Of a DNA stretch of 64,000 nt, positions 36,790-58,341 are shown one piece after another. Origin of the DNA: Phallusia mammillata (taxonomy: Eukaryota). Under the pieces are notes generated by a model that saw only the letters and a program-made list of their open reading frames with translations, had not been told where the DNA came from and ran no database searches. Each line of letters opens with the position of its first letter. The first letter of the stretch is position 1. Both the position numbers and the translations under genes were made by a program. The DNA is taken from positions 27,528,001 through 27,592,000 of the forward strand of contig OZ281498.1 in the NCBI GenBank assembly GCA_965637545.1, written 5' to 3'.

Positions 36790-36960
36790 GTTTATCTGTG
36801 TAGCTCAGTTGGTAGAGCGCGTGTCCCGGAAAGACTCCTGTCGTGGGTTCGAATCCCACCGCTGGCTGGATTTTTCTTGCCTGTGCCTTGCCGTATTGGA
36901 ATGCTTGGTAACCGGCTGATTCGGTATAACGCCTTGAATGAGCCTGACGTACTATGTTTT
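36790..36960 (+). mobile_element. tRNA-derived SINE with intact A and B boxes
   Basis: TAGCTCAGTTGGTAGAGC at 36801, GTGGGTTCGAATCCCAC T arm, no pairing acceptor stem; body shared with three other copies in the window. Confidence 0.85.
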
Positions 36961-37414
36961 GTAGTAACAATGTGCGAAAACAGGAAACGCTGTACATGGA
37001 TATATGTAATAAAAATCAGTGTAAAAACGTTGCGATTATCATGCATACAAACAAGCATAGAATGGTTTAAAACACAAATGTTACTCAGTTTCAATGCACA
37101 TTTTGTACAGCTCAAAAAATCCAGGTGTGTATAAACATTTGATTGTTTGCAAAATATAGTACACAATAATATAGTGCTTCGAAACGAAAAAAAAACGTTT
37201 AGGCTGCGTTTAAATATTGTTATCGCGTTGAAGATGACGTGTCCATTTGCCGAAACATTCGACAATAAAGCATGTGCCATTTACGTTCATTTGGGTTATA
37301 ATATTTCTAGCAAGTCATTGTTTTTGTGTAAAAGTGTGGAACAAGGCATAGAACGGGTTTATCCCTACAGGGAAAAAGATGGGCAAAACCGAAAGTTTAT
37401 TGTTTATTTCAGCA

Positions 37415-40400
37415 TCAGATATCGGTGTCTGCAATATAAGGAGAGGGTCGGCTTCCTTCAGGCAAGCTATCATCCAAATCCACACTAACCGCCCTCGGTA
37501 AGTCGAACATCTGAGGACCCAGACTCGGTTGCCAACCACGCCGGGTTGCTATGTCAACGTTTCTCCGTGGCAACGTCGATCCCTCACTCGGAGTCTTCCA
37601 ACGAATAGGGGAAGTCCCCTGATCTTTAGCATCAACTGCTACGTCACCGGGCTCCGATGATGACGTGGTGACGGTGGTCTCATCCGATGTTGACGACGCG
37701 GCACGTTGCTCGACAGGTGGCGCTGTTTCATCATCCGAACTCTCAAAACTGTCGCTGGATTCGTACGAGCTGACGTCACTGTTGCTCTGCGCGCTCCTCC
37801 TAGATTGCTCCTCACTCCTCCTACTTCTTCTCCTCTCGCTTCGACGACGTCTGGAACTCGGCGTTCTGCTTCGGTGACGACGACTAGCCGGGCTGCGACT
37901 GCGATGACGTCGACGACGGTCACGTGATGAGGATCTTGAGCGCCTCCGTGCGGCAGCAGCTGCGGCTGCGTCGATACTTCGTTCCTGGAAATAATCAACA
38001 TCACATTAATGCGACAACAGATGTTGAAAAATGAAGAATAGTTTAAAATGAAATCAACCCTACAGTCGCAGTTTTCCGGTAATTACCGTCATCTACATCA
38101 AAATAATCCAAAACCCAGTGTGTAAAACCCAAGGCCAGTGGTTCTCGACCGGGGTCCGCAAAGCGTTTTCAGGGGGGTCGCGACAACTTCTTATGTCGCC
38201 CAAAAACGAATTGATAAATCGCTATTAAAGTAAAGGCTTCAGAGATGGTAAACGCGCTGCAATAGCTAAAACTTCAAAGGGGTCGCAATTAGATTACAGC
38301 ATCGAAAAGGGTCCGCAAAGGCAAAAAGGTTGAGAACCACTGCCTTAGGCCAAACAGAATCAACCGGTGTACACAATATTTACATAATATATATATTTCA
38401 CCAAATGTTTATGGCATCTTAAGTTCTAATGGTTCAACGAACATAATGTAGCATCAATTTATTAAATTTCTCATATCACGTTGTTTAATGTTGTTTTAAT
38501 TGATCAATTTTCTCATAAAAACCTATTAAATGTTCCAATAACGTCCACTCATATAAACGGGTTTTTTTACCTGATAAGCTGGCTCCCTCGGTGTGTAAGG
38601 GTTGGCTCGTTTCACCTCGTCATGGACGTAAGCTTTGTTGTTGAAACTCGCCAAGTCCTTCGGGTCGTGAGTGAACAACGCTCTGAAATCGTGTGGGTTA
38701 GAAAAAATCAAAGAAAAATAAACTGTTGCTACCAAACATATCGTAGTAACATTTGCCAGAAGAACGTTGTTAAGTTTTTATATCAAAGAAACATTGGGTT
38801 GCTTATTATTGTGGTGCACGGTCAGTGGTGGGATTCAAGTTTTTTGTCAGCCGGTTCTATCAGAAAAGTCATATTTTTCAGCTGGTTCTGTTACAAAAAG
38901 TCCATTGACAGTAACCAGTAATGCTAACCGGTTCGCTGATCTCGTAAAATTTCGTGAGACGGTTCTATGGAACTGCGTATGGCCCATTATCGTCTCCATC
39001 TTGGAAAAAGAAATATAATAGACACCCAAAAACTTACTCTTTTTCCTTCTTGCGCCGCTTAGCGGAATAACAGCAGCAAGCTATGATGATAGCGCCCACT
39101 AGGAGCAGAAACGCGCCCACGGCAGCGAGTATAATCATCCACAACGCCACCACCGTCTCACATTGAGACCCCAGGAACCAAACGTCACTTTGTGAAATAC
39201 ATCTGTAACACAACAAACTACGTCAAAAATGTGTTCACAAGGTCATGGGTTCTAATCCCATCTCGGTCGCTTGTGTTTCCTGAGCTAAAAACTTGAGCGG
39301 TTGCCACACAATAAAGTATGTCATTGATTGCTGACGTCACACACTCGTTTGTTCACGTCACACGTCACCCTATTGTGACGTATTCGGCCTGATGTGTTTT
39401 TTAATTGAAAGGTTCGGGACAAAACATATCAACTGTTGCTACAATAATATACAGACTAAATCAAGCTCTTATAGCAAATGTATTGTTGTAACGTTCCCAA
39501 TAAGACGTCGAAACGTCCTTTCAAGCAATTCATTTGCGAGAAGAACATTATTTAGTTTAAGTCGCCACAAAATGTTTTTCTGAGTAAGAAACTTGAGCGT
39601 CATTGCTCCAACCCAGTGGTTCCTGATGGGTTGAACTACATTGAAGTCACCAACTGCATAAGTCGAAACAAAGTTAAACAGACTCGCAATAAACCAGGCA
39701 GCTAGATGGCGGACTCATTGTGAGCAAAACGCATTCAGGCGTTGCGCGCCCACCGAGGATAAAAATCAATCAAACAAAATTAGGTTTAAATTAGCTCGTG
39801 TTTTGATGTTGTAAAGCATAAGGAACGGTGCTTACGTGCATGTCGGGGTCTCTGCGATCGAAGCTTGTGCACAAGTTCCGTTGTTTTTGCAGAAATCCTT
39901 AAGACAGGGTGACACGCAGTTAACTTGTACTCCTGCCGGTGCTTCGTTGCAAGCTGTGTTGGCTGGACACGTCACTGTTCCGGGAGTGTCGCATAAACCT
40001 TGACCTGGGAGTAAAGAACCGACATTGAATAGAAAAGTTACACAGAAGTCATTGCTTTAAAACGCACGTTCGATAACGCACGGTACGGATTTGAAATGCT
40101 TCTTGGATATACTACTGTGGGGAACTTCTTAGTTTTCTTGTGAAAACAATATGAAAATAGTAATTCGTATGTTAAATAGTATAGTTAAATGGTTTTAGAG
40201 ATTTTCGCCTGATATACGCATACAACTTTTTCAAGCGTTTCTGCACGTTTTTGTTCTGTCATTAACATTAATTGAAAAAACCCAAAAAACACTTGTTTTT
40301 AAAATTATTTTTTTCCATAGTCAGTTCTGAAGGCACTCGTATAAAAGGTGGGCACATTTTTGCGAGCTACAGAAACCTTGGGAAAACATACATAACCTTT

Positions 40401-41648
40401 TGTTCAAACCACAGACTCACCCGTAAACTGAAAAGCTGCTTCGTCCTCCGCCACAACAGCAAAGAATGTGCCAAACGGACCAGAGAGCAAGTCATTCACT
40501 ATCAAGTTATAATTTCCTATCCCATTTGCGATATCAGCATCTGAGGTGGTTTGATTCAGAACACTGTACCTGGCTTCTACATCATATGTCACCTGCAACA
40601 AAACACCAACTTAGCTACCATATTTATCACGTTTCAGTCCTTTCTGGTCCTAATTTTGCCTTCAGTACACCTATTTGCGCAAATGAAAATGCAAAGTAGT
40701 TAAGTCAGGCCGGGTTCGGGCTTGAAAAGTTTTAGGAGACGGGCTTGATTCGGGCCTGGCTTTATATTCTGTGTCAGTAATTGTTGTGGCTAGTTTGCTG
40801 GACTTAACGTAATGTCCAACAGCCCTAAAGCGTCTTGTTAGGCCATTGTCTACCATTCTCCATTGTATCTGTCTTCTTTATTATAGTGCCTATTTCCCAA
40901 AACAACCAGTTTTATTCAACTCCAATGTTAGACAAGTAAGTGTTGTACTTACATCAGTTTTTTCTGCATCGACAACAGTCGTTCTGACGTTGTTTGCTGT
41001 TTGGAATCCAACTAGGTTGGCTTCGTAGAAAGGCCCGATCTGCGCAAATGAATATTCTATAATTTGTTTTAACCGGGATCAGTTTATAATTGGAGTTAGC
41101 TAGAATCAAGCGTTTTTATACAATATAAAACAGTGTCATCTGCGAAAAACTGTATTGCAACATGAAGCAGAAAACTTACAGATGTGATGAAATTGTTCGA
41201 TGTGAAAGTTGAATCTTCAAAATTTCGAGTTAATCTCACAGTTGTTGTGTAAATCTTGACGGTATTTGCAGCTGTAACAGAAAGTCACAAGGTTACGGGT
41301 TCGATTCCCCCTGGAAAACATAAACACGATAAAACTCACCAATTACTGCGGGGCTGTCGCTTACATTCACAAGGGGAAATCCCGGAATCTGTCCAACTTA
41401 AAATAAAAAGCATTGTTTTATACTTATGACATCATAATACCGCTGCACGCAACACAAGAGATATCGAATTAAGCTTAATTTCCTCGTTAAATTTGTTTGA
41501 AAATATATGTTTCGACAAAACAGGGGTATGGTAAAGATTGTTTATTTAATCACTAAAAGATACCTGTTAGAAACGGTTGCGTCACAATCACGGCTATTGT
41601 GAGGTAATGAAAGACTTCCGAACCGGAATTCCGTCGACAAACGGGCAT
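37415..41648 (-). CDS. Paralog C: type I membrane protein, signal peptide / SEA-like / EGF-like / TM / RS-rich tail, about 502 aa
   Basis: Exons 41648-41564 (signal exon less certain), 41396-41340, 41271-41180, 41039-40953, 40592-40421, 40004-39836, 39202-39038, 38682-38571, 37984-37415; all phases compatible. Cys pattern CKNNGTC..C.C..WFLGSQCE; TM LWMIILAAVGAFLLLVGAIIIACCC followed by KRRKK. Confidence 0.85.
38136..38342. mobile_element. hAT-type MITE (CAGTGGTTCTC TIR, GGGGTCGC core)
   Basis: TIRs CAGTGGTTCTCGACC / GGTTGAGAACCACTG; flanks CCCAAGGC / CCTTAGGC. Confidence 0.85.
38823..38973. mobile_element. Truncated CAGTGGTGGGATTC-family MITE
   Basis: One TIR plus core; the other end is missing. 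Confidence 0.85.
39230..39640 (+). mobile_element. Fragments of a second tRNA-derived SINE family (Ciona Cics-like core)
   Basis: GGTCATGGGTTCTAATCCC..GCTTGTGTTTCCTGAGC at 39240-39300 and TTGCTCCAACCCAGTGGTTCCTGATGGGTTG at about 39604 resemble the ascidian SINE core as recalled; reverse-strand relative at 44200-44265. Confidence 0.6.
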
Positions 41649-44199
41649 TGTGACGACACAAAACAGAAATATGATCTACAGTGCAGGATTTTTTTAAATG
41701 CAACTTATCGTGGAGAAAATGAACTGAAAGTTGGTTTAACTTGAATCTCGTGCTTTGTAGGTCAAAGTTCATGAAAGGTTTAAAGTTTTGTTGCTACAAA
41801 ACTATTGTCCTCAACCTTATTGCTACTATTTGACATATTAAACAAAATTGTTGGGTCGAAAACAAACAACGTACAGGAGAACCATTAAACACAGAATAGA
41901 AGGACGCTTTTTTAATTTGTTTAATCCCTTGATTTAATCAAGGTATATATATAAGCAAAGTCCATAGCCTTGTTGTTTCAAAACGATATTACAGTTATCG
42001 CAAGCTTTGTCAAAACTTTAAGCAATCGTCAAAGAAAACACAACAGCAAATTTGAATTACAAACGACAATATCATACTCCTATCTTCGCCATTTATGCGT
42101 TTAGGGCTACTGTTTGAAATATCGCGAACAAAAAAAGCTCTTTACGGTCTTTTTCAGTAATGCGAATTTCAGAAAGCATGTACGTTGTCCAGTTTTGATA
42201 TGCTGCTGAACTTAACCACAATGAATATTACATATTTGAAGCACCACTACATGAAACGTTATGACAGCACTTCACCAGCTAATATCGATTATACTGGTTT
42301 AAAACACGATTTGTTACGTTGGGTGTTAAAATATTAAACGTTTCAGTGACGATAACAGTTCGGTAACGTTTAATTATTATTAAAAACATATTTCTGTTCA
42401 TCGAGTTTTATGCAGTAAGCAATGCGATTCACTTAAGAAAGTTACTTGTTTTAAACATTTGAAACACTAAAGTTTAACTTGAAAAAAATCTGAACTAAGT
42501 TCATCCTGAAGTAAAAATCATATAATATTCCCCAAGCTATGCTCTACAACTCAACGCAACTTTATTCAACACTCGAATAAAACGATTTCCTCTATTTCTC
42601 ATTTTAACAAAGCACATAACAATGTTCCTCTTGTTGTACACTCTACAAATGTTCCCTGCCTATATGAAGTCATAAAAGCGATTCATGGTTGCGGAACGCT
42701 TGGTTTGTTCTCACATAAACCTCTTTGTGACGACATAGTTCTATTTGAACGCCCACTGCCTCTGCGAAATAGCTTGATAAAAACCTTTTACCGAAACAGG
42801 CTATGCTTGACTGGCAGTGCGCAAACACGATAAAGCAAACAGAGAGGGGCCCTGCCTCAGTAAAACACCACAAGCTCTCCCTGGTTGGTTTCTTTATTGC
42901 TGTATAGCCAGGACGTGAACACTGGATTCCACCGGGGAGGGTCAAATCGATGCGGGTTTGAATTTTACGATCATGTTTATCGATTTGTCAATATTGTCTC
43001 ACGGTGTTACGTCACAGAATATTTTCACGAGATTTATCGTTTTTCAAGTCTGAAAATTTTATTTCACCAATTTTTTTCCAGGTTTCTTATTTAACGTTTT
43101 GGTGTTTAACTTGCTGACTTCCAGCAGATTGAAATTCTGTTCTCCAAGCTTCAAACCAATTGTTTAAACTTCTCTTCTAATAAAGCAACTAAACATATTT
43201 GTACAGCAAGAAAAGTATCTGTTTCCTTACAACTGTACATCTTCTAAACTAAGACTGTAGTTGATCATTAACAACTTGAATGATTCCTAGCCAGATTTGA
43301 ATCTTATCGCAAAACGTTCTTGCTTCGCGTTTTCAACAAGTTTTGTTGATAAAAGTTTTCCAGCCAGACGGGCCGATAACAAACTTGCAAAGAACCCTGT
43401 TGATTTTCTGATCAAACGTAGATTTCTTGTCAGAACCACAAACGAAATGTATTTGTGCGGCAAAAGTGTAATAAATGCAAGTGTACGACGAATGGAAACA
43501 TAAACATTAAATAAAACATATTTATAGTCGGAATACAACTTGAACAAAAATGCCTTTTGGTGCCTTTTTGCGGTAAAATCTTGTTCTTATAACTTATATA
43601 ATTAACTGATATTAAGTCAGAGCCATTTACTTCTTTATAGTATTAAAAAAATATTGAACTGATATGTGCGGTAATCTCACGCTTCACGTCGACGAATGAA
43701 TGCCACATTATCATTGCAATGTTCACGACTTGAAGTTGATAAATATAGCTGTAGTTTTTGCAAACCGAGTTTTTTGTGCAAACAAATCGGTAAATTAAAC
43801 AGAAATGTATTTGGTTGCATTTGAACTTTGATCTTTCAGCAGTTTGTGGCAAGCTTTTGCCATTTGTGGCAAGATTCTGTACTGATATGAACTGAACATG
43901 GATCTTTATAGTTTCCATTTACACTGTCGACTCCTGCAAACAATATTTTTTGTGTTAGCTCGATTTGAGAGAGGGAGTCACCCCACAACTTTCTCGGTTA
44001 ATCAGAAAAAATGCTTACACAACATAACTTTACTCATTTGTTGTTTGTTTAAACTTTATCCTCGGTGGGCGGGCAACTAAATGCGTTATGCTCACAATGA
44101 GGGCTCCGTCGAGCAGCCTGTTTTATTGTTCGTTAAGTCATTTTTTTGATTTTTTTCTATGCACTTTAATTCAACCCATCGGAAACCACGGATTGGAGT

Positions 44200-44265
44200 T
44201 TCTTGCTCAAGGGAACACAAGCCACCGAGATAGGATTAGAACCAACAACCTTGTGAACATACGGC
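44200..44265 (-). mobile_element. SINE fragment, same family as 39230
   Basis: Reverse complement GTTCACAAGGTTGTTGGTTCTAATCCTATCTCGGTGGCTTGTGTTCCCTTGAGCAAGAAACT. Confidence 0.6.
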
Positions 44266-44321
44266 GGTTGCGATAAACACCTGGCAATCTTGGTGAAAGA
44301 TTTGGATCAGAACTTTACTCA

Positions 44322-47300
44322 TCATAACTTCACTCTACTCACCATGGCAACTGGGGGTTTCGGTCGTTTGTCCACCACAGCATAAGTGGGAGATTCTGAT
44401 CTAGGTGGAACTCCCAATCCCACTCCTGCCATTCCTCCTGCTCCTCCCACTCCTCCTACTCCTCCCACTGCTCCTGCATCAGGGAAGTTGGCCAACCTCC
44501 TCTCCATCAGATGAGTGTATCTTGCATCTGTATCGTCTTCCCGGGAAGAGAAGGAAGAACTTCTGCTGTGGATTCAAAACATAAAGTTGTGTGGAATCCA
44601 ATCATATGTTTAGCTCAGTGGTTCTCAACCATATGCTTTCCCACAGTTAAAAAGAAAAGGCCTATCCGTTGATTTACCGATTAAAACAGGATTTAGGTGG
44701 TTTGCGGCGATAGAAAAACGCGATCAGTGTAAGGTAGAGAATCACTGGTTTTATGTAAATGAAAATCAAATTTTAATTCAAAACAAAATAGGAATAAATA
44801 GTTTAGCCCATGTTTATGATTCAAATCCTTACTGGCAAATAGTAAAAAAATCTTGTATGTTCTAAAATAACATTATTTTCGAACACTACATACAGATCTG
44901 TTCATAAGTTTAATGGTGAAATAACGGTCGAAAATATACCTAAAAAGCGACATGCTTTGATTTTTCTAACATTTCGGCAAATGCTAATGTCATCATCAGT
45001 GATATTATTTTCAATTCTCAAATAAAGCAACTTTGAAACTGCTTTGGTTTCAACAACTCAATGTTTTAAACTTCCAACCTTCTGTTTTCCGCTGTATCTG
45101 CATTCTGAGGAACACCGACTGCGGCGTAATTGAATTCACTGGATGTTGATGAGGAGGTTGGATCATGCGTGGAGTCAAGGGATGTTGCTGCAGGAGTCCC
45201 AAAAGTCCTCGGAGCCGCGACAGGAGGAGTTACAACCTCCGGAAGAGGATCAACAACTTCTTTTTCTTCTTTATTCTCTATCTTCTTTAATTCTTGTGGC
45301 TCCGATTTTTCTTTCTGAAACAAAACATTAACAAATATTGTGAGATGATTGACATTTGGAAGACTGCTTGATCTAGTTATGCCATCCATAGATTAACTTT
45401 TCATTTTCTCTGTGTAGTTATAGTAGCTATAGATCGAGCTACTTTTTCTCGACAAAGTCGGGTCAGTGGTTTGCAGGAGTTTTTTAAAATGTCAAAAATT
45501 TGAAGTTTTTCCTTAAGTTTTGAGAATATAACATTGAAGTTTAGTGCGTTTGTAAAGACCAAGGGACGCACAACCAGGTTTTTGTTGTGTCCATGTGTTA
45601 ATGACTCGCGTGCCAACGTTTTTCCAAATAATAGTGGTCCGTGCCAGCAAATATTAATAATAAAGAGAAAGCAGAGTGTTTTGTGCATGTAAGGCTGAAT
45701 TTTAAGACAATGGCGTGATAAAAACTATAAACAAGCAGTGTAACGGGTTAAATCGTTACTTCAATATGAACACGAAAATTGGTTTCCGTGCCATGTAAAC
45801 CACCTCGACTGGCACGCGTGCCAGGGGTTGCCTGCCCCTGATGTAAAGTACATGTGATGTGGTTGTTAATAGCAGTAAGGCTGTAACCTCTGGTAAAAGT
45901 TTAAAAAGTAATTACCCAATTTGCAATTGTTATAGTTCATAACAAAATCTAGCGACTCCGCCGTTCAAATGTTACGATATGTTCTAGAATTCCAACAAAA
46001 TTCACTCACGGCTGATTTCAGACCCAAAGCCGATTTGATTGTGACGAAAACTTTCTGATTCTTCGACATCGGCTCGTCTCGCTCCTTCGACGCTTTGATG
46101 AAAGCTTTTCTCTTTTCCTTCTCGATCCTGAATTGTGACGTCATTATTGCGTGGCGATTAAATAGTGACGTCATAATTGCACAGAGAAAAATGACATCGT
46201 CACTTTTGGCGTTAAATAGTGAGGTCATAATTGCACAGACGAAAGTGACGTCATTATTGCACAGTAAATTATTTGTGACGTCATATTGATAACAATCGTT
46301 TTGTTTCTAAAGTGATTGTGGGACCAACCGCTTTTGCAAAATGGCTTTTTTTAATTCTGACTGAACACTTGAGAATATGACGTCATTGACAGTTTTATGA
46401 GGTAACCATCAGAAAGTCTGACCAACCTCTTGTCGATTCCCCGGACACAGATGCAGGTGATGAAGATCACAAGCAGGATTAATAGGAAGATCACAACGAA
46501 GTAGACGATCGGCATCCACAAATTCAACATTGTCTTACAGTTTGAACCGACAAACCAGTTGTTAGCAGATGTCACACAACTAAATACATCAACTGTTGTA
46601 TTAAGTGTGTGCTGGCTTTTCTCAATAGGCAAAGGACGTAAATTTCGGAAAACCAACAAGTTACCCTGGCAACAAAACGCAGGTTTTTAAGCGAGCTTTG
46701 AGCAGTCAAACATCACGAAAAACCTTGAGTTTATTGAAAGCATGACTATGCTTTAAACGTCATTGAAACACTGAAAATACTTTGAAATACAACAAGCGTG
46801 CTTAAGAGTATATACGTTTCACCCGAGCTTCAAGCAAACTTTTTGCAATCAACCATAACGATTAGTCAAATAAGGCCTCGAGGTTATTAAAAGCTTTTCT
46901 ACAGCCCACTTCAAGCGTTGGGAAAAAACAAATAAACCTATTTTTACCCAAACAATTTAGTTGACCACACGAAGTGTGTTCCGGAATCCGCTTTAAAAGA
47001 GAGTTCACCCAACCTTCTAAATGAACCTTACCTGCAATGCGGTGATACGTTTCCGTTATTCTGTATACATCGGCCATCGTTGAAGCAGATTGTCGAACTG
47101 AAGCACTGTGACGTACAGTTGACGTCATTGCCTATGACGTCATCGACACAAATTGCGTAAGTGTTGCACGCCGCTTCAGAACACGGGCTGTTGCCTAAAG
47201 ATTATAAAAACAAAACTTTTGTCATATTATTGGATTAACATTTTCGGCTGTTTGTTATTGCTTATGTAGTAATGTAGTACTTGACGTCCAAGATGTTTGC

Positions 47301-48984
47301 ACTAGAGTTGTATTCGGTACAATGGTTTAACTATAAATCGGTATCAGTGACTAACTTGGTGAACCTAACTGAAGATGGTAAGAATACTTGAAGAAAACAA
47401 CTTACTGAAATGCAGATTTTGTCCCAATTATTGATGTTAAAACTTTTTCATGCAAAGTGCACCTTTGCGGTTGTGAAGTCTTGCTTAAATAATTTTGTGA
47501 ATACATTAGCTAGCTTTATGAAATTACGCTTTGAAACTGCGCGGACACTTAGAGATGCGTTATTGTGTTTCAGTAAACAAAGAATTTACAACGAATTATG
47601 TGGGTTCAAATCACCTGTTGCACTAAATCCGCCCGCCCAAGTAAAGCTGCCGAAGTTTGTGTCGTTTTCGAAGGCAATTTGCACTCGAGTCTCGTTGCTG
47701 ACGACATCCACGACTTCGGCGTTTGTGTAAGATTCCAGTAAAGTAAAGTTGTAAGAAACTGTGTAGTTTGTCCGGTATGTGATCTGCATTAAACTCATCG
47801 TTAGTTCAGTTCATGTCACAGTTTGTAGCAAATTTTACTTTTTTACCCTATGTCTTTAAACTGTTGTAGGAGAGTTCAATTGACTTTACTTAAATTGTTT
47901 TGCTTATTTTTCAGGTAGCAAAATCTTTTTTTTTATTCAGTCAGTTTCAAAATTGTAATAGAAAATAAACAATTGATTGGTTTATTTTGTAAGATTTATA
48001 AAAGAATTTCGTCGTTAGTTCAGTTCATGCCGATGTTAGTAGCAAATTTAACTTTCAACCTAGACCTTAGAACTGTTGAATGCGCGTTTAAATGACTTTA
48101 CCATTCATTTGTTTGTGTATTTTTGAGTTACAGAATCAAGTTTTTTCTCAATAAGTTTCGGAATAGTGGTGATCAGAGACTGAAATATTGATTGCATCGT
48201 TATGTCAAGTTTATACAAGTAAAATTCGATCGGGTTAAACCGTCAGGTAGATGTTCGTATTTAGCTTGTTCTTACAGCTTGTTCTTGTTTGGCTTGTTTT
48301 CAAATGCAGATATTTCTGTCAAGATCCAGTTTGTATACTTTGTGATAATTAAATTAGCTTCTTTGCAGCGACTAAAGTTGTAGCCTTTTGCAAAGTTCAA
48401 ACACAAAAGTTAAATTAAAACTAAAAACCATCGATTAAATGTGTTATGTTGTCACGAGAACACTTGGTTCGTAAACAATAATTAACAATACTCACGTTAT
48501 TAGAAGTATCAGGTTTCGCAACTTCTACAGCAGTAACCCCAGGAATAGCTGAGTTGTAGTAATTCTCCACCACAGCAGCAAGCAAGCTTGCGTTGAAAGA
48601 ATCACCCGCGGTTACGTTCAGGTTCAACTGCGTCCTGAAGGTTTTGTTGAAATCAGCTGCGAAAAATTGAGGTTCGTTAGAATTTTCCGACGCGAGGGTT
48701 GGCATGGTAACCACGACGTTGTCATGGCGACTTACCAAATGTTGTTGGAGCTTCGTATTTGAAAGCAAGTTCGTTTCTTTGTTGTCCGAAAACTGTAAAA
48801 ATAAATAAATAAATAAATATATAAGTAAAAAGTGAAATGGAACCAGAATTCAAAGATTAATACTTTTAGGAAAAAAAATGGTTGACATTTTTTTTGAAGC
48901 AGAAAATGAACAAATTATGTAAAAATAAAACCAACCTAGACAAACGTTGGTGACAATGAAGCAACCCACAGCGTACAGTCGCAT
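44322..48984 (-). CDS. Paralog B: type I membrane protein, signal peptide / SEA-like / EGF-like / TM / Tyr-motif and Gly-rich tail, about 449 aa
   Basis: Exons 48984-48936, 48792-48736, 48656-48496, 47783-47615, 47194-47032, 46579-46427, 46127-46010, 45314-45079, 44565-44322 (a GTGAGT donor at 44342 could add a further last exon). Signal MRLYAVGCFIVTNVCLVFG; many N-x-S/T sites; CFNDGRC..C.C..WFVGSNC; long hydrophobic TM. Confidence 0.87.
44616..44747. mobile_element. Degenerate hAT-type MITE
   Basis: CAGTGGTTCTCAACC ... GGTAGAGAATCACTG; no clear TSD. Confidence 0.6.
45660..45840. mobile_element. Partial hAT-type MITE (TGGCACGCGTGCC family)
   Basis: End GGCACGCGTGCCAGGGGTTGCCTGCCCCTG; other end not found. 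Confidence 0.55.
46136..46283. repeat. Short imperfect tandem repeat built on TGACGTCA + ATTGC
   Basis: Four perfect TGACGTCA and one TGAGGTCA within about 150 bp. Confidence 0.85.
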
Positions 48985-50597
48985 GATTTGCGAGTTATTA
49001 CGTCACAGGAGAGGAACTGTGACGTCGATTGTATCAGTTTTACTAGATCTCAAATATTTGTCGACATTGGTTTGAGCAAACGAGCCAGATTTTTTTAAGA
49101 GGTTTGTTCTAAACCGAAAGAAGATTTATTGAGATCGCAGAGCAAAAGTAATTTATGTCAACCTTGTAAAATTAACCATAAAAATCGACTTTCTTCCTCA
49201 AACAATGCTCTTTGTTTGTTTCTTTTGTTTAAAGTAGAATCTCTCGTAAAAATTTTTTATTTTTTTATATTTAACTGTTATCTAGGGTTACGCCTTTCTT
49301 TTTATGCTCTAATGGCTGGGTCTATTGTGGCGCTCAATTGTCTGCAAAGAACTGGAACATCTTTATTGTGACGTCACAGTTGCGTGTAATTATTTTGACA
49401 AAGGATTCGAAACACCTGACTTTCTGGTGATGCTGTTTTCGCTAATTACTCAAAAATTTCTGTTGAAGTTTATTGTTATATTCCTGGCTAATACTCCGGC
49501 TCAAATAATTTGCCAGAGTGTTTGTATGCAGTGAAACATTGACCGTTCAACATGATTGTTTTTTGGACAAGTTACATGTTGAGTTCTTGCCTAATTCTCA
49601 ATCTTAAAACATTTTCGAAATTTCTGCCATCGTAATATGGCTTTGTTGTCACACGTAACTTCATCTGTACAGAAATCATTGTATTGCGATGAATGGAAAC
49701 CGGAACGGGTTTTAACATTCACAACAAAACCTTTTCATAACTTTCTGTTTAAACTACATCCAACATTGAAAAGTACTTCCTGAAAATATAATCAACTTTT
49801 TACTTTTTGCCACTTGTATAACCTTGGTCTTCCAAACTTTTCCGATCCTGTAAACTTGCACATTTTGCTGAGACAGACAAGACGTGCTTTGTATTGAAGC
49901 GAATGATGCTCATACTTACAAGGAAATACATTTTCGCTTGATACAAAAGCACAGGTGAATTTATAGCGAGCAACAAAATTGTCGTTCAACTCAGCAGAGC
50001 ATATAATCATAAAGTCTGTCCTACACACAAAGGTTTGTTTCAATAACTACATTCTCGAACAACTCTGTTTGTTTGGCGCCTTTTTCTCCTTGTTACGTCA
50101 CTATGCCGCTTGTTACTGGGGAATGGTTGACAAATAATGGGGGGGGGGGGGACTTTAGGGCGGGTTTGAACGAAAGTAATAAGTGAAAAAATTGACTTGG
50201 ATAAAAGGATTTTCTTATTTTACACGATCAGCTGATAAAATTATGTCACTAATAAAGCGCGATCAGTAAAATATTATAACTGCATTAAAAAGTACAAAAA
50301 TCACATCGTAAACAGTTTGATTAAAGAAACGACAAGAAAAAAAACGAAGATACAATCACATAAATGAACAAAAATTCGAAAACAAAATTTATGGTTTGAA
50401 AATTTATGAGATGAATAATATGTTTGGGTGTCCGTTAGGTGTCGGTAGAGCTGCGTCAGATAAGCTTTGATTCGCTGATGTAATCCTGGTCCTGTGAAAG
50501 TGATAAGTTGAACCACCCAAGCATAGCACTGAGCTGGTGCTGCTTATGCTCTCGCATTATGTTATCAAATGCATAACAACTAAAATTAACATATTTT

Positions 50598-50790
50598 TAT
50601 AACTGGGATCAGCCCTGAAGCGTCCATGCAGACTAGCGATCATGGCACACTTATATAAAATCATAGTTATACGCCAGGTCTATTGAAGGCGTTATATCGG
50701 ATCAGCCGGTCACCAAGCATTCCCATATGGCAAGGCGTAGGCTAGAAAAGTCTAGCTTGCGGTGGGATTCGAACCCATGACACGAGTGTT
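50598..50790 (-). mobile_element. tRNA-derived SINE copy
   Basis: GCGGTGGGATTCGAACCC head end, CCAAGCATTCCC body, ATAACTGGGATCAGCCC tail; an opposite-strand fragment lies at about 50870-50920. Confidence 0.85.
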
Positions 50791-51727
50791 TCCAGGGGTG
50801 TTCGAACCCAGATCGTCAAAATATCTGCTACATCATACAATAATCGGAATTTGTTGATTTTCCTCGCCTTAGGAATGCTTGGGAGACCCTAACACCTTCA
50901 ATAGGCCTGGTGTGCTATGACAAATGTTCAGCAACGTAAAACTTGATTTTGTATTGTTAATATTTTGTGCAAGCACGATTAGTTCAAGCCAACAATCCTC
51001 TACATCCGTTATTTCACTTTTAGTTTGCTTGGGGAATTAAATTTACAAAAAGTGTTACACAACTTGGCCCCAATACAGTGTCAGCAAGTTCACCAAGAAA
51101 CAAATTAAACAAATAAACCACCACAGCATGCAAAAGATGAGGCTACTCTTAAACATGCAACAAATACATTCCATGCCTTCACACTTGCTGCAACTGACAA
51201 GCGATGACGTAATAATACTCGCCTGTGACGTAACGATTAGTGGTAAGTCGAGTGACGTCATACGAAGGTGATCTGTTAACGTGGTTAGAATGAGTGACGT
51301 CATCGACGTAATACGACAGTGACGTCACTTGTTGATTACGTCGTGTTAATAATACAAAAAAAAGCATTTAATAATCTAGCAATAAAAAAGACTAAATACG
51401 GATTACTAATTTATAAACTAAACTTGAGATATGACGTCATATCCCTGTGACATCATAAGTACCAATTCGGCAAATGTTCCAAACGCTACAAATAGGAGAA
51501 ATTGGGTATTTTTCAACCAACGCATTTTATTTCATGCTCTTTTTATTATATTGGTTGTTTTAAGGATAATATTCAAAATCCTTATTTTTCTTTTTTTGTT
51601 GCTGTTAGATTAATCCAGTCAGTTTTAGATTTTAGCCGAATTCTTTTTTTTTCGTTCGGTCCAAACTATTTGTCTGGATTAGGCGAAGATCCGAATTGAC
51701 CCAATCCGGTTTAACCAAGGTTTACTG

Positions 51728-51772
51728 CAGTGGTTCCCAACCAGGGGGGAATTCCCCACTTGGGAACCACTG
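51728..51772. mobile_element. 45-bp minimal hAT MITE (TIRs only)
   Basis: CAGTGGTTCCCAA ... TTGGGAACCACTG; TSD GTTTACTG / GTTTGCTG. Confidence 0.85.
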
Positions 51773-51812
51773 GTTTGCTGTATTTCAACCCAATAAGACT
51801 GTTATGTTTCAC

Positions 51813-54800
51813 TCAGCAAACGCCACCTACCGGTTCTTGGCTTCTGGCCTGTTTATTCGGAATCGAGTATTTCGGCATTCCACTGCTCGACTCTGCAGGC
51901 GTAACCGGAGCCCGCCAATCAAATCCTCCAGGCAGGTCAGTTGATGCGTATTGTTGAGAATCACTACCCTCTGTTACGTCACTATCGGTGCTTGTGCTGC
52001 TGCTTATGTCCTCATAATGAGTTGGGATCTTGGCAGGAGTTACTCCTCGTGATGATGGTGAGGATGTTCTCGTGGAGTTTCGGGAGGTTATCACGGATTC
52101 GGAAGGAGGACTCGTTCTCGGAGGAGCCGGATGTTGATCAGTGCGGGCTTGAGGAAGAGTTTTATCTCTCGTGTAACTCCCGTTTGATTTCTTTTCATGA
52201 TCCGCTTTGAACCGTTCGAGGGCGCTCGCGTTCGCTTGCTGGGGATTTAATATTTCTATGTTGTGAACTTACATCGGTTGACAGACAGCTTTATTTAAGT
52301 TTACTGGAGTGATTTTGTATGAAACAGTTTTTGCTAAAGTTAGAGATTAAATTTATCGTTTTCCAACATTTACTAAATGCCCAAATATTGGCAAAATGGT
52401 TAATTGATTTTGCTTTAACGTTCACGGACAATATTGTTGGTTTTATTCAACCTTCAGTGGGTCGTCCTGTCGTGGGTAATTCCCGTTTGTGATACTAATT
52501 TTCGGCTGCTGGGCAATTTTTTTCTGATTTGGATATTCGTACTTCTTTGGTTTCGGTTTAAATCTTCTAAAAACAAAACCTGGCTTGGTCAAAGTGTTGA
52601 TTAAAACATACCGGAAACAAATTTTCTTACCTGATTCTGACGTCACGATACAAACAAACACCGACAATGATGATTATGACGAGACAAATAATGACACAAA
52701 CCAGCACGACGATGGGAATCCATATGTGAATGTAAGTTTCGCAATGTCGTCCAATGTACCATGAGATAGTGCCAGTGGGGCAACTACAAATGTCAAATAT
52801 ATGTTGTGGTGTTGAACACTAGGTGTTAAATTACCATATTGATGTCAAAAACGTCTTGTAAATCTTGATGTTTTGAATTGTTTTAAAATGGTAAGATTTT
52901 AACAAAAGATATAAACACGTAAATGCCTTTGTTTTTCAAAATGATTCGGCATTTACATAACATTGGCCATCGTCAGTAAGTAACACTTTTCACTGTCAGC
53001 GATTAATTGTTCCAAGTTCCAACTACGAAAATATCAGTAAGTTTTACAAAAACAGGCAGCCGCATATCAGTAAACATTTCAATAGGCCAGCTGTAAATAT
53101 TAACTTAATTTACACCATGTGTTTATTGGTTAATAGTTAGGCCAGCTGTAACTTAAAGGCCAGCTGTAACTTAATGGGAAATAATAATGCGCACGTTCAC
53201 ACTCTTGTAATGTTACCAGCTTTGAAACTTTATTTGTGAAATCCACCGACCTGCAAACCGGCTGCACCGAACCGTCGCTATGGTGACACCAGCCATTGTT
53301 ACGACAGAAGTTGACTTTGCATGACGACATACACATGACGTCAATCCCCTCAGTTTGTTCTTCGCAAAAAGTGAACCTTCCTTGGTGACATTCGGCTTTG
53401 TCACAAATGCTGTCGCCTTTAAACACAACAACATGTTACTAAAATCACACAAACTGGGTTCGAATCCCACCGAGGGTGGGATTGTTTGCTAACCTGTGAA
53501 TCTGAAAGTTGAAAGATCGACGGTGAAGGAATTGGTGGAGTCGTTTCCCTCAATGCCAAGTTTGACGGCTTGTATTCTGCCTATCAGCTGACGTATGGCC
53601 CTATCACTGTTGTTGACGTCATTCCGAAGTGTGACGTAATTATACGTGACGTCATACGTCAACTTGAAACGAAGGTAACCGGGTTTAAGTTGAGTTATAA
53701 CTGGATGTGTAAAGTTTCTAATCTCGTTACCAAAACTTGTGTTGAGTTTTGATCGTTGGGAACGAGATTGTCGACCCTGATAAAACCTTCTGATGTTGAG
53801 CTGTAAAAAGCTTCCGCCTGAAGATAGGAAAAAGGCAAGTGTAACAATTTGTTCAGTTATAATTGGAGGCAAATACGAAGAATGAAACATATGCCATTTC
53901 AACGACATTGTTATCATTTTCGCTCACAAATAAAGGTGTAAACTCTTAACTTAGTGGAAATGTTTCGTTTTGTTGCATTGTTGGCTCAGGGACGAATTAA
54001 GCTTGTATGGGGCTTCTAGCTAAAACTTGAGAAACGCCCCTATCTATTGATAACTTGTAAAATCGTTGTTAATACCAGGGAGTCGAACCACTTGTCATAT
54101 GGGTTCAGGTTCGGTTCGGGTTCACTTGGTTTTGTTTTTAAGGGTTCGGGTTCGGTTCAGGTTTTTAAAAATGTATATTTTCGGGTTATGGTTTTGTTCC
54201 GGTTTGGTCAAATTATCCGGTCCGAACCGGTTTGCGGTTTTTAAACCGGTTTAAATTTTTATTCATTTTAATTTAATTCTACCCATCATCTACCTGACCT
54301 TAACAAACTCCAAAAGAATTTTGCCCGTGCACTGTTATTTTTGACACGCCCTATAAGTGTTATATCGCAAATTCTTCAGTGCGCTGTTTTGAACAAAATC
54401 ACAAAATATTAAACAAACTGCATTTTTTACTGGTTCGGTTCCGGTTCGGGTCCAACGCCCAACAAAATATGCGGTTCAACTCCGGTTCGGGTTTTCACAA
54501 AATCGTAATTAGCGGTTCGGGTTCGGTTCGGGTTTAATGAAATTAACCGTTCAAACCGGTTCGCGGGTTCGGGTTCAGTTCCGGTTCGACTCCCTGGTTA
54601 ATACGGCAAAAACATTAAGGAATAGGAAGCCCTTGACTGAATCCAGCCAGCACGCGCTTTCAAATCGCCATTATATTTATTTGTGCTTATAGAAGAAGTT
54701 TTCCATACCGCTTGTATGAAGATCTGGTTGGTGAAAGTCGCAGTCGTTCGTAAAAACACGGTAGTTGTGTAAACCTTCGTGGTTGTGTTTGCTAAAATAA

Positions 54801-55463
54801 CAAAATCACGTGAAACGACACGATGTCACCACGACTACCTTTCATATAATTCAGTTGGCCAAAGTTAGAATATTACAGTTTAGCGTTGAAATGCTGTTGT
54901 ATTTCAAAGTACAAAGAAAAATATTTGTGTTAAAAATTCTCACGTGGTCGAATCGCTTGATCTGGGATTGTCACAAAAGGGTATTCCCCGTCAACTTGGC
55001 ATGAAACTGAAATATGATTTGAAGGAAATAAAATATTACTAGTTTTCATATTTCAACTCAACAAAACGGTTAAGCGACATGCTGTTTTCAATGTGTTTCG
55101 GCCAATGCTTATCACATCGTGTTAAGTCACGTGATAATTATTATATTTAAGTTAGATGAAAAGTTGATAAACAAGACGCTCCATATAGCACATAATTTTT
55201 ATGTGATTCTTTAAAAGGTTATGTGTTGAATGAACTGTAAATTGTGCTGTAACCAAGTAAGCTTGCGCTGCACGTTGGTCGTTAAGTTAAAACATTTAGT
55301 TGGTTTAGCAAGGCAAGCAATGGATACGTTGGTAGTAGGCAAAATACATGGATAGGTTGCTAGGGCCTCATTTTTCATTCACCCGACCGTAAAATCGTAC
55401 AGGAAACCCTTTAAACTCACCAAGTGTGACGAGCGAGAGGATAAATCCGAACTTTGCCCACAT
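51813..55463 (-). CDS. Paralog A: type I membrane protein, signal peptide / SEA-like / EGF-like / TM / Ser-Pro-rich tail, about 434 aa
   Basis: Exons 55463-55421, 55006-54944, 54791-54709, 53817-53731, 53662-53494, 53416-53251, 52783-52631, 52566-52452, 52238-51813; all phases compatible. Signal MWAKFGFILSLVTLVSC; FCRNNGWC..C.CP..WYIGRHCE; TM IWIPIVVLVCVIICLVIIIIVGVCL. Confidence 0.87.
54076..54596. mobile_element. hAT-type non-autonomous element with many GGTTC(G) subterminal repeats
   Basis: TIRs CAGGGAGTCGAACC / GGTTCGACTCCCTG; perfect TSD GTTAATAC. Confidence 0.93.
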
Positions 55464-58341
55464 TTTACACATTCTCTCAAGCGTGAAATGACGTCACTTT
55501 GTCAGAAAGTTGGTGGTGTGATAATATTATCTTTTCCCAGTTGAGCGGTTGCAACAAAGGCTTTCGAAAACACTCAAAGTTTGAAAGACCCTTGAGATGA
55601 AGCGGTTTATGCCGTTAAGTTGTATTTGAATATAAATTGATCGGTGATCTGTAAATGAACGAAGTTTGTAAAAAATATAAAAAGTTTTCGTTTTCTAATT
55701 ATCAATCATTCAAAAGTATTTTTATACTGAAGATTTTACCTGGGCGCTTTTGTGCTTTCAAAAATGGACCAAACGTAAATCTAATATGGCCTATATCTTC
55801 AATTCACTTAAATTTATTTGAAACTTCTGCCTCGCAGTTAAATTACTTTTATATCATCTTATTATAACAGCAAACACACAACATTTTAACTCATTTAACT
55901 TAACTTATAACCTAAAACTGTTCTATTTCTCTCTCATTCCATTTTCCAATCTGATCCTTTCTCATAATATTATTTCGTGGAGCCTTCAAACTTGAACAGT
56001 TTTGTTCTGTTCTATGCCCGATTTGAAGTGAAGAGGTTTCGTCTGTCTTTCGTCAAACCTTCCCGTCACCGCTTCACTGACTGTGGGTGAAAAAATAAAT
56101 GTGACATTATAGTGGGGGTTGTATGTATGGGTAAGTGAGGGGGGTTCGAGATATTTGTGTGGGTGACTCATCCAACATATGGGCACCGGCACATAGAGGG
56201 GGCACTTGCTCACACTCGGAGTATCAAAGCCTTAAATTTAACATATTTTGTCGAAAAAACTTGATGAATAAAAATGCATCAAACTCCAAAAAGTAAAGAA
56301 AAGAAAGTCAGTAATTGTAACAATACTCTTTTTCGTTGACGAAAATCTGTTGATGTACTTTTTCTTGAGAAACATAGGCTAATAACGACTAAACTGATTA
56401 ACTAATGCGTAGTCGAAATGTGTCAACGTTGTGAAACAACGCATTAGTTTAATCGTTTTCCAGTATTTCAAATGTAATTCCGATGAATCTTTTGGGTTTT
56501 GTGGATATTTTATGAGATTTCCTTATTTGGTATTGCTTCCGAAAGCACAGACTAAACCGGGATTTGAACTGCCAACCTTGAAAGCACAGGCATTTGCGTT
56601 TTAGTTTCTCTGCAACTGTACATAACGCCTTATGCCGTTTACATTAGTTGCTAAAATATTTTGTTTTGTTTCATTTTGAACAAAATAACAAATATTTGCA
56701 TTAAATACGATTTCTATGAATATAATAACACTGCACAGCGTTTCTCTTCATATTTTTCTGCCTTTTTTGTAAGACAGTTCCTACTCACAGTCAAAAATTG
56801 TCTGTCACAGTTTATAAATTCAAAAGGACTGTTTTATATTTCTCTGCACTTTCATGTTTTGACCATTTACGTTTTTTTGTAAACTCAGACACAAACTGCC
56901 ATGTTAAAAATCCGACAGCTGTTCAGCGAAAAAAGTAATTTGAAACACTGTTTTGAAAGGAAACCACAGAATGAAAAAGAAAGAGATTTTATTTTCTGCG
57001 TATGAAAGACAATTTATTGTTTTCTAATTAATTAGGACACATAACAAAAATTTATTTTCTACTATCAAGTTATTTGAAGTGTGCACTGTTCGGAAATACA
57101 TATTTCAGCAGGTTTTACTTGTAAACAAGCATTTCAGACTGTTTTCGTTAGTGCTGACTGCTGACTGCTGATTGAAGAACACTTTTTTAGATTACAGTAA
57201 ATTTGTTATTTGGTGAAGGTTTTTCGAAAAGAGTTAGGTCTTAGTAACAATATCACATAACAAATTGCATAGTTTAAAATTGCTGATACTGCTCCACTAG
57301 TTAAAGTAGATCCTACTGTTTTGCCAAAAGAATAATTCCTGTTATCTGGCAGTCCTTATAGGTTTCAATGTGATATGTTAGATTTGTGCATATAATTTTA
57401 TTTATTAATGACATAAACTTTGTGTTATAATACAATTGTTAAATGTTTTTAGCTTATTTTGTCAATTTTTTGGCAGTTATTTTGGAATTAAATGTTGATA
57501 AAAAATCTCAGATAAGTGAAAACTTAGACAAGTTGTCTGGTAACTGGAGTAAACCAGTTTAATAAAGTATATTTAATTTAAAAAGAAGGTTTTAATACAG
57601 TTGAGTTGTATGTTGGTATCCATACTTTACTGACCAGATATTGTATGAACACCTGATTTCTTTACATCTTATTTGTGAGGTACCAGTTATTAGTTTATTT
57701 AAAACAACCACTTAAAAATATAAATACATTGCATTGATGTAGATTTCACCAACCTTTGGCTCAGAAGGCTTTCTTTTGAAACCCTGTCTTTTCTTTTGTC
57801 TTTTTTAAGCCCTTGTGTGGCTCTTAACAGAGTGATGAAAATGCACTTAAATTTATTCAAGTATGATTCTCTAAATAAATGGCTCTTCAAGCTTGAAAAC
57901 GTTGTCACTCGCTGCCCGGCAAAAGTGGCCCTATAACAGATACAGTTCAAGATAACTGCAATATCTGTTGAAGTAACTAAAGGTGTTGTACATTTACTGA
58001 CACTATGAAACTATTCAATGGTTTAAGTACTTTTAAAGTTGTAACATTGTTCCGAAAGTATTTTTCAGTCTTATGTGGTAGCATCTTTGCAGTTACCAAG
58101 ACTATGTTTTTAGACTCCATGCTTAAAAAAAACATATTTAGATTTTTTCCTTCTCGATTCAAAGCGCATACTTATGTTGTAAATATGCTTGAAAAATGCT
58201 GGATATTTACGACTTTTATTTTTTAGGTTTCTATGTTTAATTACTGCTGCATAAAGATGTGTGATTTGTAAATTATTTGCTGAAACTGTAAACACAAATT
58301 TTCATCATGGCTTCTCGATTGTCGACCAAAAAGGACAGCAA

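Follow-up and report, generated by a model that had tools for sequence, protein, structure and literature searches.

The genes for MUC3, MUC12 and MUC17 form a tandem cluster whose products carry a class I PDZ motif, and mucins of this kind emerged in vertebrates (PMC9578598). Here we describe a cluster of three genes, A, B and C, in a 64,000-nucleotide (nt) stretch of the genome of the tunicate Phallusia mammillata (contig OZ281498.1, positions 27,528,001 to 27,592,000 of the forward strand; this whole stretch is called the window below), whose predicted proteins recall the membrane-bound end of those mucins. As in the C-terminal cassette of MUC3, MUC12 and MUC17 (and of MUC13), a SEA or SEA-like domain is followed by an EGF-like module, a single transmembrane (TM) helix and a cytoplasmic tail. 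The genes lie in tandem, as reported for the mucins (PMC9578598), two of the proteins have class I PDZ-type ends (TDI in C, established by RNA; STV, predicted, in B), and mucin-3A and mucin-12 are among the four nearest Atlas models. The trio differs from the mucins in having no PTS (mucin) domain, about 20 residues being all that precedes the SEA-like domain, and no G/SVVV autocleavage motif; its SEA sequence lies beyond the reach of Pfam, four extra Cys stand before the EGF pattern, and C-type tails carry an Arg/Ser-rich domain.

A further point of comparison is IMPG2, which has some 1,200 residues and contains, besides a second SEA domain, mucin-like regions that bear glycosaminoglycans. 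Its C-terminal SEA-EGF-EGF-TM portion has the same succession of a SEA domain, Cys-rich EGF-like modules and a TM helix, and IMPG2 is the second-nearest Atlas model (TM-score by query 0.46-0.47, 120-149 residues aligned), whereas the trio proteins have 430-510 residues and one SEA-like domain, with no detectable sequence similarity to IMPG2.

We read the locus, with a probability of about 0.7, as an ancient trio of tandem genes for compact type I membrane glycoproteins of a mucin-less SEA-EGF-TM kind, most likely PDZ-scaffolded surface adaptors or sensors. The tunicate family to which they belong is a variant of the known SEA-EGF-TM type, and its function is inferred. What carries this reading is a gene structure and gene order shared across tunicates, the fold predicted for the ectodomain, and cytoplasmic tails that are conserved among orthologues. 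The sister group of the vertebrates has a conserved three-gene family with a SEA-like, EGF-like, TM and PDZ-end cassette and no mucin domain, and divergence has left its SEA domain without annotation in any database. We also provide exon models for A and B, which are absent from the protein collections searched.

Gene structure and age of the cluster

The three genes are all on the minus strand, at the places given by a sequence-only reading of the window, which contains no N. In the recomputed models every exon border is AG/GT, phases are equal at homologous borders, and each gene has nine exons, encoding proteins of 434 (A), 449 (B) and 502 (C) residues. The features are as follows.

51813..55472, minus strand: gene A, nine exons, 434 residues from the ATG at 55463, model from sequence
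55463-55421, 55006-54944, 54791-54709, 53817-53731, 53662-53494, 53416-53251, 52783-52631, 52566-52452, 52238-51813, minus strand: gene A exons (43, 63, 83, 87, 169, 166, 153, 115 and 426 nt), model
54944..55006, minus strand: gene A exon 2, 63 nt, phase 1, encoding EYPFVTIPD; found by exon scan and absent from the first reading
53494..54791, minus strand: gene A SEA-like domain, Cys-free, three exons (83, 87 and 169 nt), profile positions 16-140, fold taken from homologue models
53416-53251, minus strand: gene A Cys-rich exon with 8 Cys, model
52783-52631, minus strand: gene A exon of 153 nt for the EGF end and TM helix, model
43919..48984, minus strand: gene B, 9-10 exons, 447-449 residues, model from sequence
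48984-48936, 48792-48736, 48656-48496 (fused), 47783-47615, 47194-47032, 46579-46427, minus strand: gene B exons one to six, model
46127-46010 (donor uncertain), 45314-45079, 44565-44343 (or read-through to the stop at 44322) and likely 43933-43919, minus strand: later gene B exons, model; exon sizes of the gene are 49, 57, 161, 169, 163, 153, 118, 236 and 244 nt
47615..48656, minus strand: gene B SEA-like domain, two exons (161 nt, fused, and 169 nt), from the family profile
47194-47032, minus strand: gene B Cys-rich exon, model
46579-46427, minus strand: gene B exon of 153 nt for the EGF end and TM helix, model
43919..43933, minus strand: predicted terminal micro-exon of gene B, ESTV and stop, reached from the ATG|GTGAGT donor at 44343/44342
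37415..41728, minus strand: gene C, nine exons, 502 residues, from RNA junctions
41728 (5' untranslated region)/41648 (ATG)-41564, 41396-41340, 41271-41180, 41039-40953, 40592-40421, 40004-39836, 39202-39038, 38682-38571, 37984-37415, minus strand: gene C exons (85, 57, 92, 87, 172, 169, 165, 112 and 570 nt), from RNA
40421..41271, minus strand: gene C SEA-like domain, three exons (92, 87 and 172 nt), residues ~48-165, no Cys, from an AlphaFold2 model of an allele
40004-39836, minus strand: gene C Cys-rich exon, from RNA
39202-39038, minus strand: gene C exon of 165 nt for the EGF end, TM helix and juxtamembrane CCCY and KRRKKEKE, from RNA
38682-38571 and 37984-37415, minus strand: gene C cytoplasmic tail exons, reading frame fixed by RNA

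The exon sizes first proposed (57/57 nt in B and C, 87/87 in A and C, 169/169/172 and 153/153/165) were all right, as was the agreement of phases at homologous borders. Our own initial models of all three genes lost the reading frame past the TM exon, so that an exon with a length of 1 modulo 3 must have been missed, and RNA showed this exon in C (112 nt, 38682-38571). By homology the matching exon has 115 nt in A and 118 nt in B, and an exon of 112-118 nt thus stands between TM exon and tail in every member of the trio. Spliced reads, the check proposed for the models, confirm gene C throughout: all its junctions are seen in spliced RNA contigs from four runs in three studies, and one contig (X19, record 4) covers all nine exons.

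Introns fall at about positions 19, 50, 83, 140 and 195 of the family profile, in phases 1, 0, 0, 1 and 2, and when the profile was run over the Clavelina, Ciona and Styela loci the same positions were found in every gene, with the exception of the split at 50 in B. There, a single exon of 161 nt covers profile positions 15-83, which are divided near 50 in every other family gene examined; judging from sequence, exon 3 of B is a fusion of two ancestral exons whose intron has been lost in B. At the protein level the three are only 25-29% identical in pairs, and yet single-exon profiles recover the other two genes from the 240-Mb genome at E 1e-21 to 1e-27, a homology well above chance. The same scan, the genome-wide search that had been proposed for the family, gave no further locus better than E 0.3; as the profiles match three genes and nothing else, the family has three members in P. 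mammillata.

Outside this genome, a HMMER search with the profile of the Cys-rich exon gave 24 matches among 1.84 billion representatives. The named relatives are from Phallusia, Ciona intestinalis, C. savignyi, Clavelina lepadiformis and Styela clava, and the rest lie on transcript-sized contigs; they are labelled 'uncharacterized' or automatically named 'EGF-like domain-containing protein', and none has a precomputed Pfam domain. Neither HMMER nor word-based searches found relatives beyond tunicate or tunicate-like sequences, which upholds the earlier view of the family as lineage-specific. The word-based searches themselves say little: full-length C gave four matches with a query swamped by Arg/Ser words, the C ectodomain returned only itself, and the C-terminal 83 residues returned the query and Clavelina. 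In a collection of 15 billion proteins C is present and the A and B proteins are absent. The best HMMER match is P0001, the UniRef entry 'Uncharacterized protein LOC100182499' of Phallusia mammillata, also of 502 residues. With 97% identity to the gene C protein (16 of 502 residues differ), it is an allele of this gene. No record was returned when the C-like and B-like proteins of Ciona were looked up exactly, and searches by locus names or accessions found no paper on the family.

In a tree of the family, C-type and A/B-type proteins form two clades, each at 99/98. Clavelina carries an A-like (476 residues), a B-like (449) and a C-like (508) gene in the same order on one strand, followed by convergent RFT1/ADAT3; the window is similar, with the end of RFT1 some 2 kb past gene C. 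Tandem pairs of family genes are also found in Ciona and Styela. The shared order, the RFT1 neighbor and the tandem copies indicate that the cluster is old and stable rather than a recent private expansion, and A, B and C are ancient paralogues. The sequence-only reading had described the family as diversified. Taken in the sense of a rapid expansion private to one lineage, this part of it is not supported by the comparison, as there are only three copies, with positional 1:1 orthologues in Clavelina and tandem copies in Ciona and Styela.

Fold of the ectodomain

Each protein runs from a signal peptide through about 20 residues, a Cys-free domain of about 118 residues, a 10-Cys module and a TM helix to a disordered tail rich in motifs. 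Ahead of the SEA-like domain lies a short conserved N-terminal strand, FPLV.V.D, with which the EYPFVTIPD of gene A exon 2 aligns. By the topology predicted from sequence the SEA-like domain is extracellular and lies about 70 residues ahead of the TM helix; there are 3-10 N-glycosylation sequons per ectodomain (four in A, 10 in B and three in C). No PTS or mucin region was found in any member, about 20 residues being all that separates signal peptide from SEA-like domain, and the autocleavage motif G[ST][VIL][VIL] does not occur in the first 200 residues of 20 sequences. Where some SEA domains, but not all, have their G|S[VI]VV autoproteolysis site, in the turn from strand 2 to strand 3, gene C has V-D-A-E. 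The models and the motif scan thus agree with what had been proposed for the architecture, namely a signal peptide, SEA-like and EGF-like domains and a single TM helix with neither a mucin region nor a cleavage motif.

To represent the two clades, we used the allele P0001 as a stand-in for the C clade and the Ciona A-like protein P0007 for the A clade. The AlphaFold2 model of P0001:29-270, built from a 17-row alignment, has a mean pLDDT of 88.5 and comprises a beta-alpha-beta-beta-alpha-beta domain followed by a small module rich in disulfides and a TM helix. The second model, of the P0007 domain alone, has a pLDDT of 85.3 and the same order of strands and helices. In the VIA exhaustive search the C-clade model matched best the SEA domain of Gpr126/ADGRG6 (PDB 6v55, residues 373-506; Z 9.4, root-mean-square deviation [rmsd] 2.6, 101 residues aligned), followed by TMPRSS6 (8.3) and MUC16 (8.2, 7.9 and 7.9) and then by protocadherin-15 MAD12, TROP2 and dystroglycan. 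The A-clade model gave Gpr126 (9.6), TMPRSS6 (8.3) and MUC16 (7.6-7.8), and the SEA domain of HAT reached 6.3-6.4 with both. Chains of SEA domains solved by crystallography or cryo-electron microscopy superpose at rmsd 2.6-3.4 over 92-109 residues, and the nuclear magnetic resonance structure 1ivz of MUC16 at 5.0-6.4 over 110-115. Identity to these best solved matches is only 3-13%, and their contexts (a seven-transmembrane receptor, a protease and a giant mucin) differ from that of the trio; the matches speak for a shared fold and not for a shared function.

Several results weigh against calling the domain SEA. Pfam SEA (PF01390) recognized none of 17 family members at E<=1, no SEA chain appeared when the family profile was searched against PDB sequences, and Foldseek against the PDB returned nothing at E<=0.001 for either model. 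The VIA scores of 8-9.6 barely exceed the usual noise of the tool (7-8), with Cas RRM-like domains tied at 8.0-8.7 for the A-clade model, and the fold of A and B themselves is taken from homologues with 28-39% identity. When the whole genome was scanned with PF01390 at E<=10, only sub-threshold exon matches were obtained, none of them in the window, but such an exon-by-exon scan is weak. Given the low margin in Z and the Cas ties, the fold is certainly ferredoxin-like, as modeled, and the name SEA comes in part from context. We conclude from the models and that context that the Cys-free domain is SEA-like, with a sequence too divergent for profiles. The SEA reading therefore stands on structure, where the best solved matches are SEA domains, and fails on sequence profiles. 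Profile searches with Pfam and HMMER likewise gave a weak signal for EGF (6 of 17) and none for SEA, and structure prediction yielded the SEA-type order of elements with no significant Foldseek match.

The Cys-rich module that follows has 10 invariant Cys, four of them ahead of a six-Cys EGF pattern, C-x4-C-x5-C-x10-C-x-C-x12-C. The six EGF Cys, the W and the G before the last Cys are invariant in the trio as well as in 17 homologues, and the pattern ends about six residues ahead of a conserved W that opens the TM helix. The best E of the six Pfam EGF (PF00008) matches is 0.012, and single-exon matches, at 12.6-12.8 bits, do not reach the curated cut-off of 21.5 bits. Taken as a whole, the module has as its nearest Atlas models a chordate 'EGF-like domain-containing protein', IMPG2, mucin-3A and the mucin-12 family, in agreement with the likeness to the membrane-proximal modules of IMPG2, MUC3 and MUC12 noted from sequence. 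Language-model features place both clades with mucin-12/SEA clusters (0.78-0.79) and serve as leads only.

Cytoplasmic tails and competing explanations

In all seven C-type orthologues the tail contains N-x-x-[YF], an Arg/Ser-rich stretch, SPI.W and R.GW.PSLGP.M, and ends in T-[DT]-[IV], a class I PDZ-type end that in gene C reads TDI and is confirmed by RNA. A basic juxtamembrane stretch is found in all seven, and a Cys cluster next to the membrane in most. The SR-protein-like, Arg/Ser-rich tail of gene C (37415-37984, minus strand) was also seen in P0003, P0005, P0010, P0013 and P0018, and such tails are kept in Ciona, Clavelina, Styela and further relatives. A tail of this kind is unusual for a surface protein; that it links the protein to SR-kinase-type regulation is a side reading that we think unlikely.

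Tails of the A/B type carry tyrosine motifs, P.Y..V, and the B-type proteins end in STV in Clavelina, TTV in Ciona and TLV in one further relative. Gene B has a strong ATG|GTGAGT donor ahead of its stop at 44322 and, at 43933, a good acceptor from which a four-codon exon begins; given this pair of sites and the layout of the Clavelina orthologue, B probably ends in the ESTV micro-exon at 43933-43919 rather than at 44322. A donor stands at the corresponding place of the Clavelina B-like gene, after ...NRPL, and the product of this gene, P0002, finishes with ...VSTV, although a scan for the terminal exon that must encode these residues found nothing. The end of A is less clear. Its stop at 51813 may be intron read-through, with a GTAGGT donor after ...QEP at about 51830, and there is nothing by which to choose among the candidate terminal micro-exons at 51444 (...SQV), 51272 (ITFV) and 51193 (LQQV), a point that weighs against the overall reading. 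For the Clavelina A-like gene (L001 3224-3823) an ESIIV micro-exon was located, and past ...KKLSQPQ three alternative C-termini were seen (ESIIV, IVYVGEEMAI and intron read-through); the PDZ-type end of this protein may be switched by alternative splicing.

These data support a model in which the proteins would stand at the cell surface with N-glycosylated, uncleaved, stalk-like ectodomains. By analogy with the C-terminal subunit of a membrane mucin, the SEA-EGF stalk would be held and sorted through the tail. In the C type, the tail would combine a class I PDZ-binding end with juxtamembrane Cys and a basic stretch, likely palmitoylated, and a phosphorylatable Arg/Ser region; in the A/B type it would offer tyrosine motifs (P.Y..V), joined, in B-type proteins at least, by an S/T-x-V end. 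Such conserved tails point to PDZ-scaffolded membrane proteins rather than to a receptor, immune or gamete role, and the proteins would be surface adaptors or sensors and not a fast-evolving repertoire for recognition.

The data also allow other readings, with which this one has to be compared. Lineage-private, fast-diversifying recognition receptors, with immune, gamete or allorecognition roles and ectodomains under diversifying selection, would account for paralogues that share so little sequence, for the very long branch and 10 sequons of B, and for the pattern of differences between gene C and P0001: of the 16, the SEA-like domain accounts for 11, the Cys module for four and the 240-residue tail for one (Fisher p = 2e-4). 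With two protein alleles compared, this 15-to-1 ectodomain excess is only a hint of one strongly divergent haplotype or of balancing selection. However, seven of the eight variants of gene C among RNA contigs are synonymous, and contigs from other individuals carry the genome allele in the exon concerned, not the P0001 version. All Cys and core residues are invariant, the genome holds only three copies, and the Clavelina trio with its order and RFT1, together with the tandem copies of Ciona and Styela, makes the divergence an old paralogy; we regard such receptors as very unlikely. There is likewise only a small chance that C alone works and that A, B or both are decaying copies without expression. 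The absence of A and B from the large protein collection that contains C would fit, as would the loss in B, on the longest branch of the tree, of an invariant Gly. Yet each has nine intact exons with canonical splice sites and no internal stop; all 10 Cys are kept, with 15 of 15 family-invariant residues in A and 14 of 15 in B; orthologues are annotated in Clavelina and Ciona, with several isoforms; and B preserves the conserved layout of the terminal micro-exon.

Two further explanations concern the domains. Membrane-anchored growth-factor precursors of the EGF family, comparable to neuregulin, Spitz, TGF-alpha or CSPG5, would present or shed their EGF module to an ErbB-type receptor, and like ErbB ligands and CSPG5 the trio has a single EGF-like module directly before the TM helix. 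PDB matches to the family profile are solely EGF, TGF-alpha, Spitz, betacellulin and neuregulin (E 0.006-0.7), the nearest Atlas models include CSPG5, and most of the 17 homologues have G-x-R-C after C-x-C, although A, B and C instead read GRHC, GSNC and GSQC. Against this, every E-value exceeds 0.001, 12 residues separate the fifth from the sixth Cys (8 in ErbB ligands), a SEA-like domain lies upstream, the roughly six residues between the last Cys and the TM W leave no stalk for a sheddase, and the large conserved tails would go unexplained, all of which makes a growth-factor role improbable in our view. Somewhat less remote, but still rather unlikely, is a reading of the Cys-free domain as a generic ferredoxin-like sandwich with a convergent likeness to SEA, in a family unrelated to SEA-module proteins. 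The lack of any Pfam SEA signal, the Cas RRM-like domains and the fact that Foldseek ranks ABM/IsdG/ACT-type ferredoxin-like domains first are what it would predict. Solved SEA domains nevertheless have the top Z with both models and the best Foldseek TM-scores (0.48, compared with about 0.3 for the bacterial domains), the whole SEA-EGF-TM module matches models of IMPG2, mucin-3A and mucin-12, and an extracellular, membrane-proximal position is typical of SEA.

If the trio is instead what we take it to be, a set of mucin-less SEA-EGF-TM surface adaptors or sensors, the question of its relation to the mucins follows. We offer only tentatively, and as an unlikely if attractive idea, that it descends from an ancestral mucin-less SEA-EGF-TM-PDZ gene and that MUC3, MUC12 and MUC17, perhaps also MUC13, arose by gain of a PTS exon. 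If so, the cassette that anchors gut mucins in the membrane and signals from there would predate vertebrates and be open to study in a simple chordate in the absence of a mucin domain. Such a relationship would provide a minimal model of the cassette alone, for sorting, scaffolding and mechanosensing, and a dated step in mucin evolution.

Observations within and beside the genes

A second in-frame ATG of gene A lies at 55472, and the intron between its 87- and 169-nt exons (53730-53663) is very short, at 68 nt. Between genes B and C, two runs, X1 and X2, and no others have unspliced RNA contigs over 42642-43299, the mapped region reaching as far as 43299. If B ends at 43933-43919, these contigs could represent the distal portion of its 3' untranslated region, which would mean that B is expressed.

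In intron 7 of gene C (38700-39100), contig depth runs into thousands in four runs, compared with about 10-30 over the C exons, and the contigs have many loose ends and odd short joints; this stretch is a dispersed, highly transcribed repeat that does not belong to the gene. Translations of open reading frames containing G(G)IRTHD(L/R) recur at 36792-37280, 39218-39340 and 44088-44276, and look like copies of a tRNA-derived short interspersed nuclear element near the 3' ends or in introns of the trio genes. An open frame at 59214-59468 on the plus strand resembles the N-terminal part of cullin, which places the cluster between RFT1 and a cullin gene.

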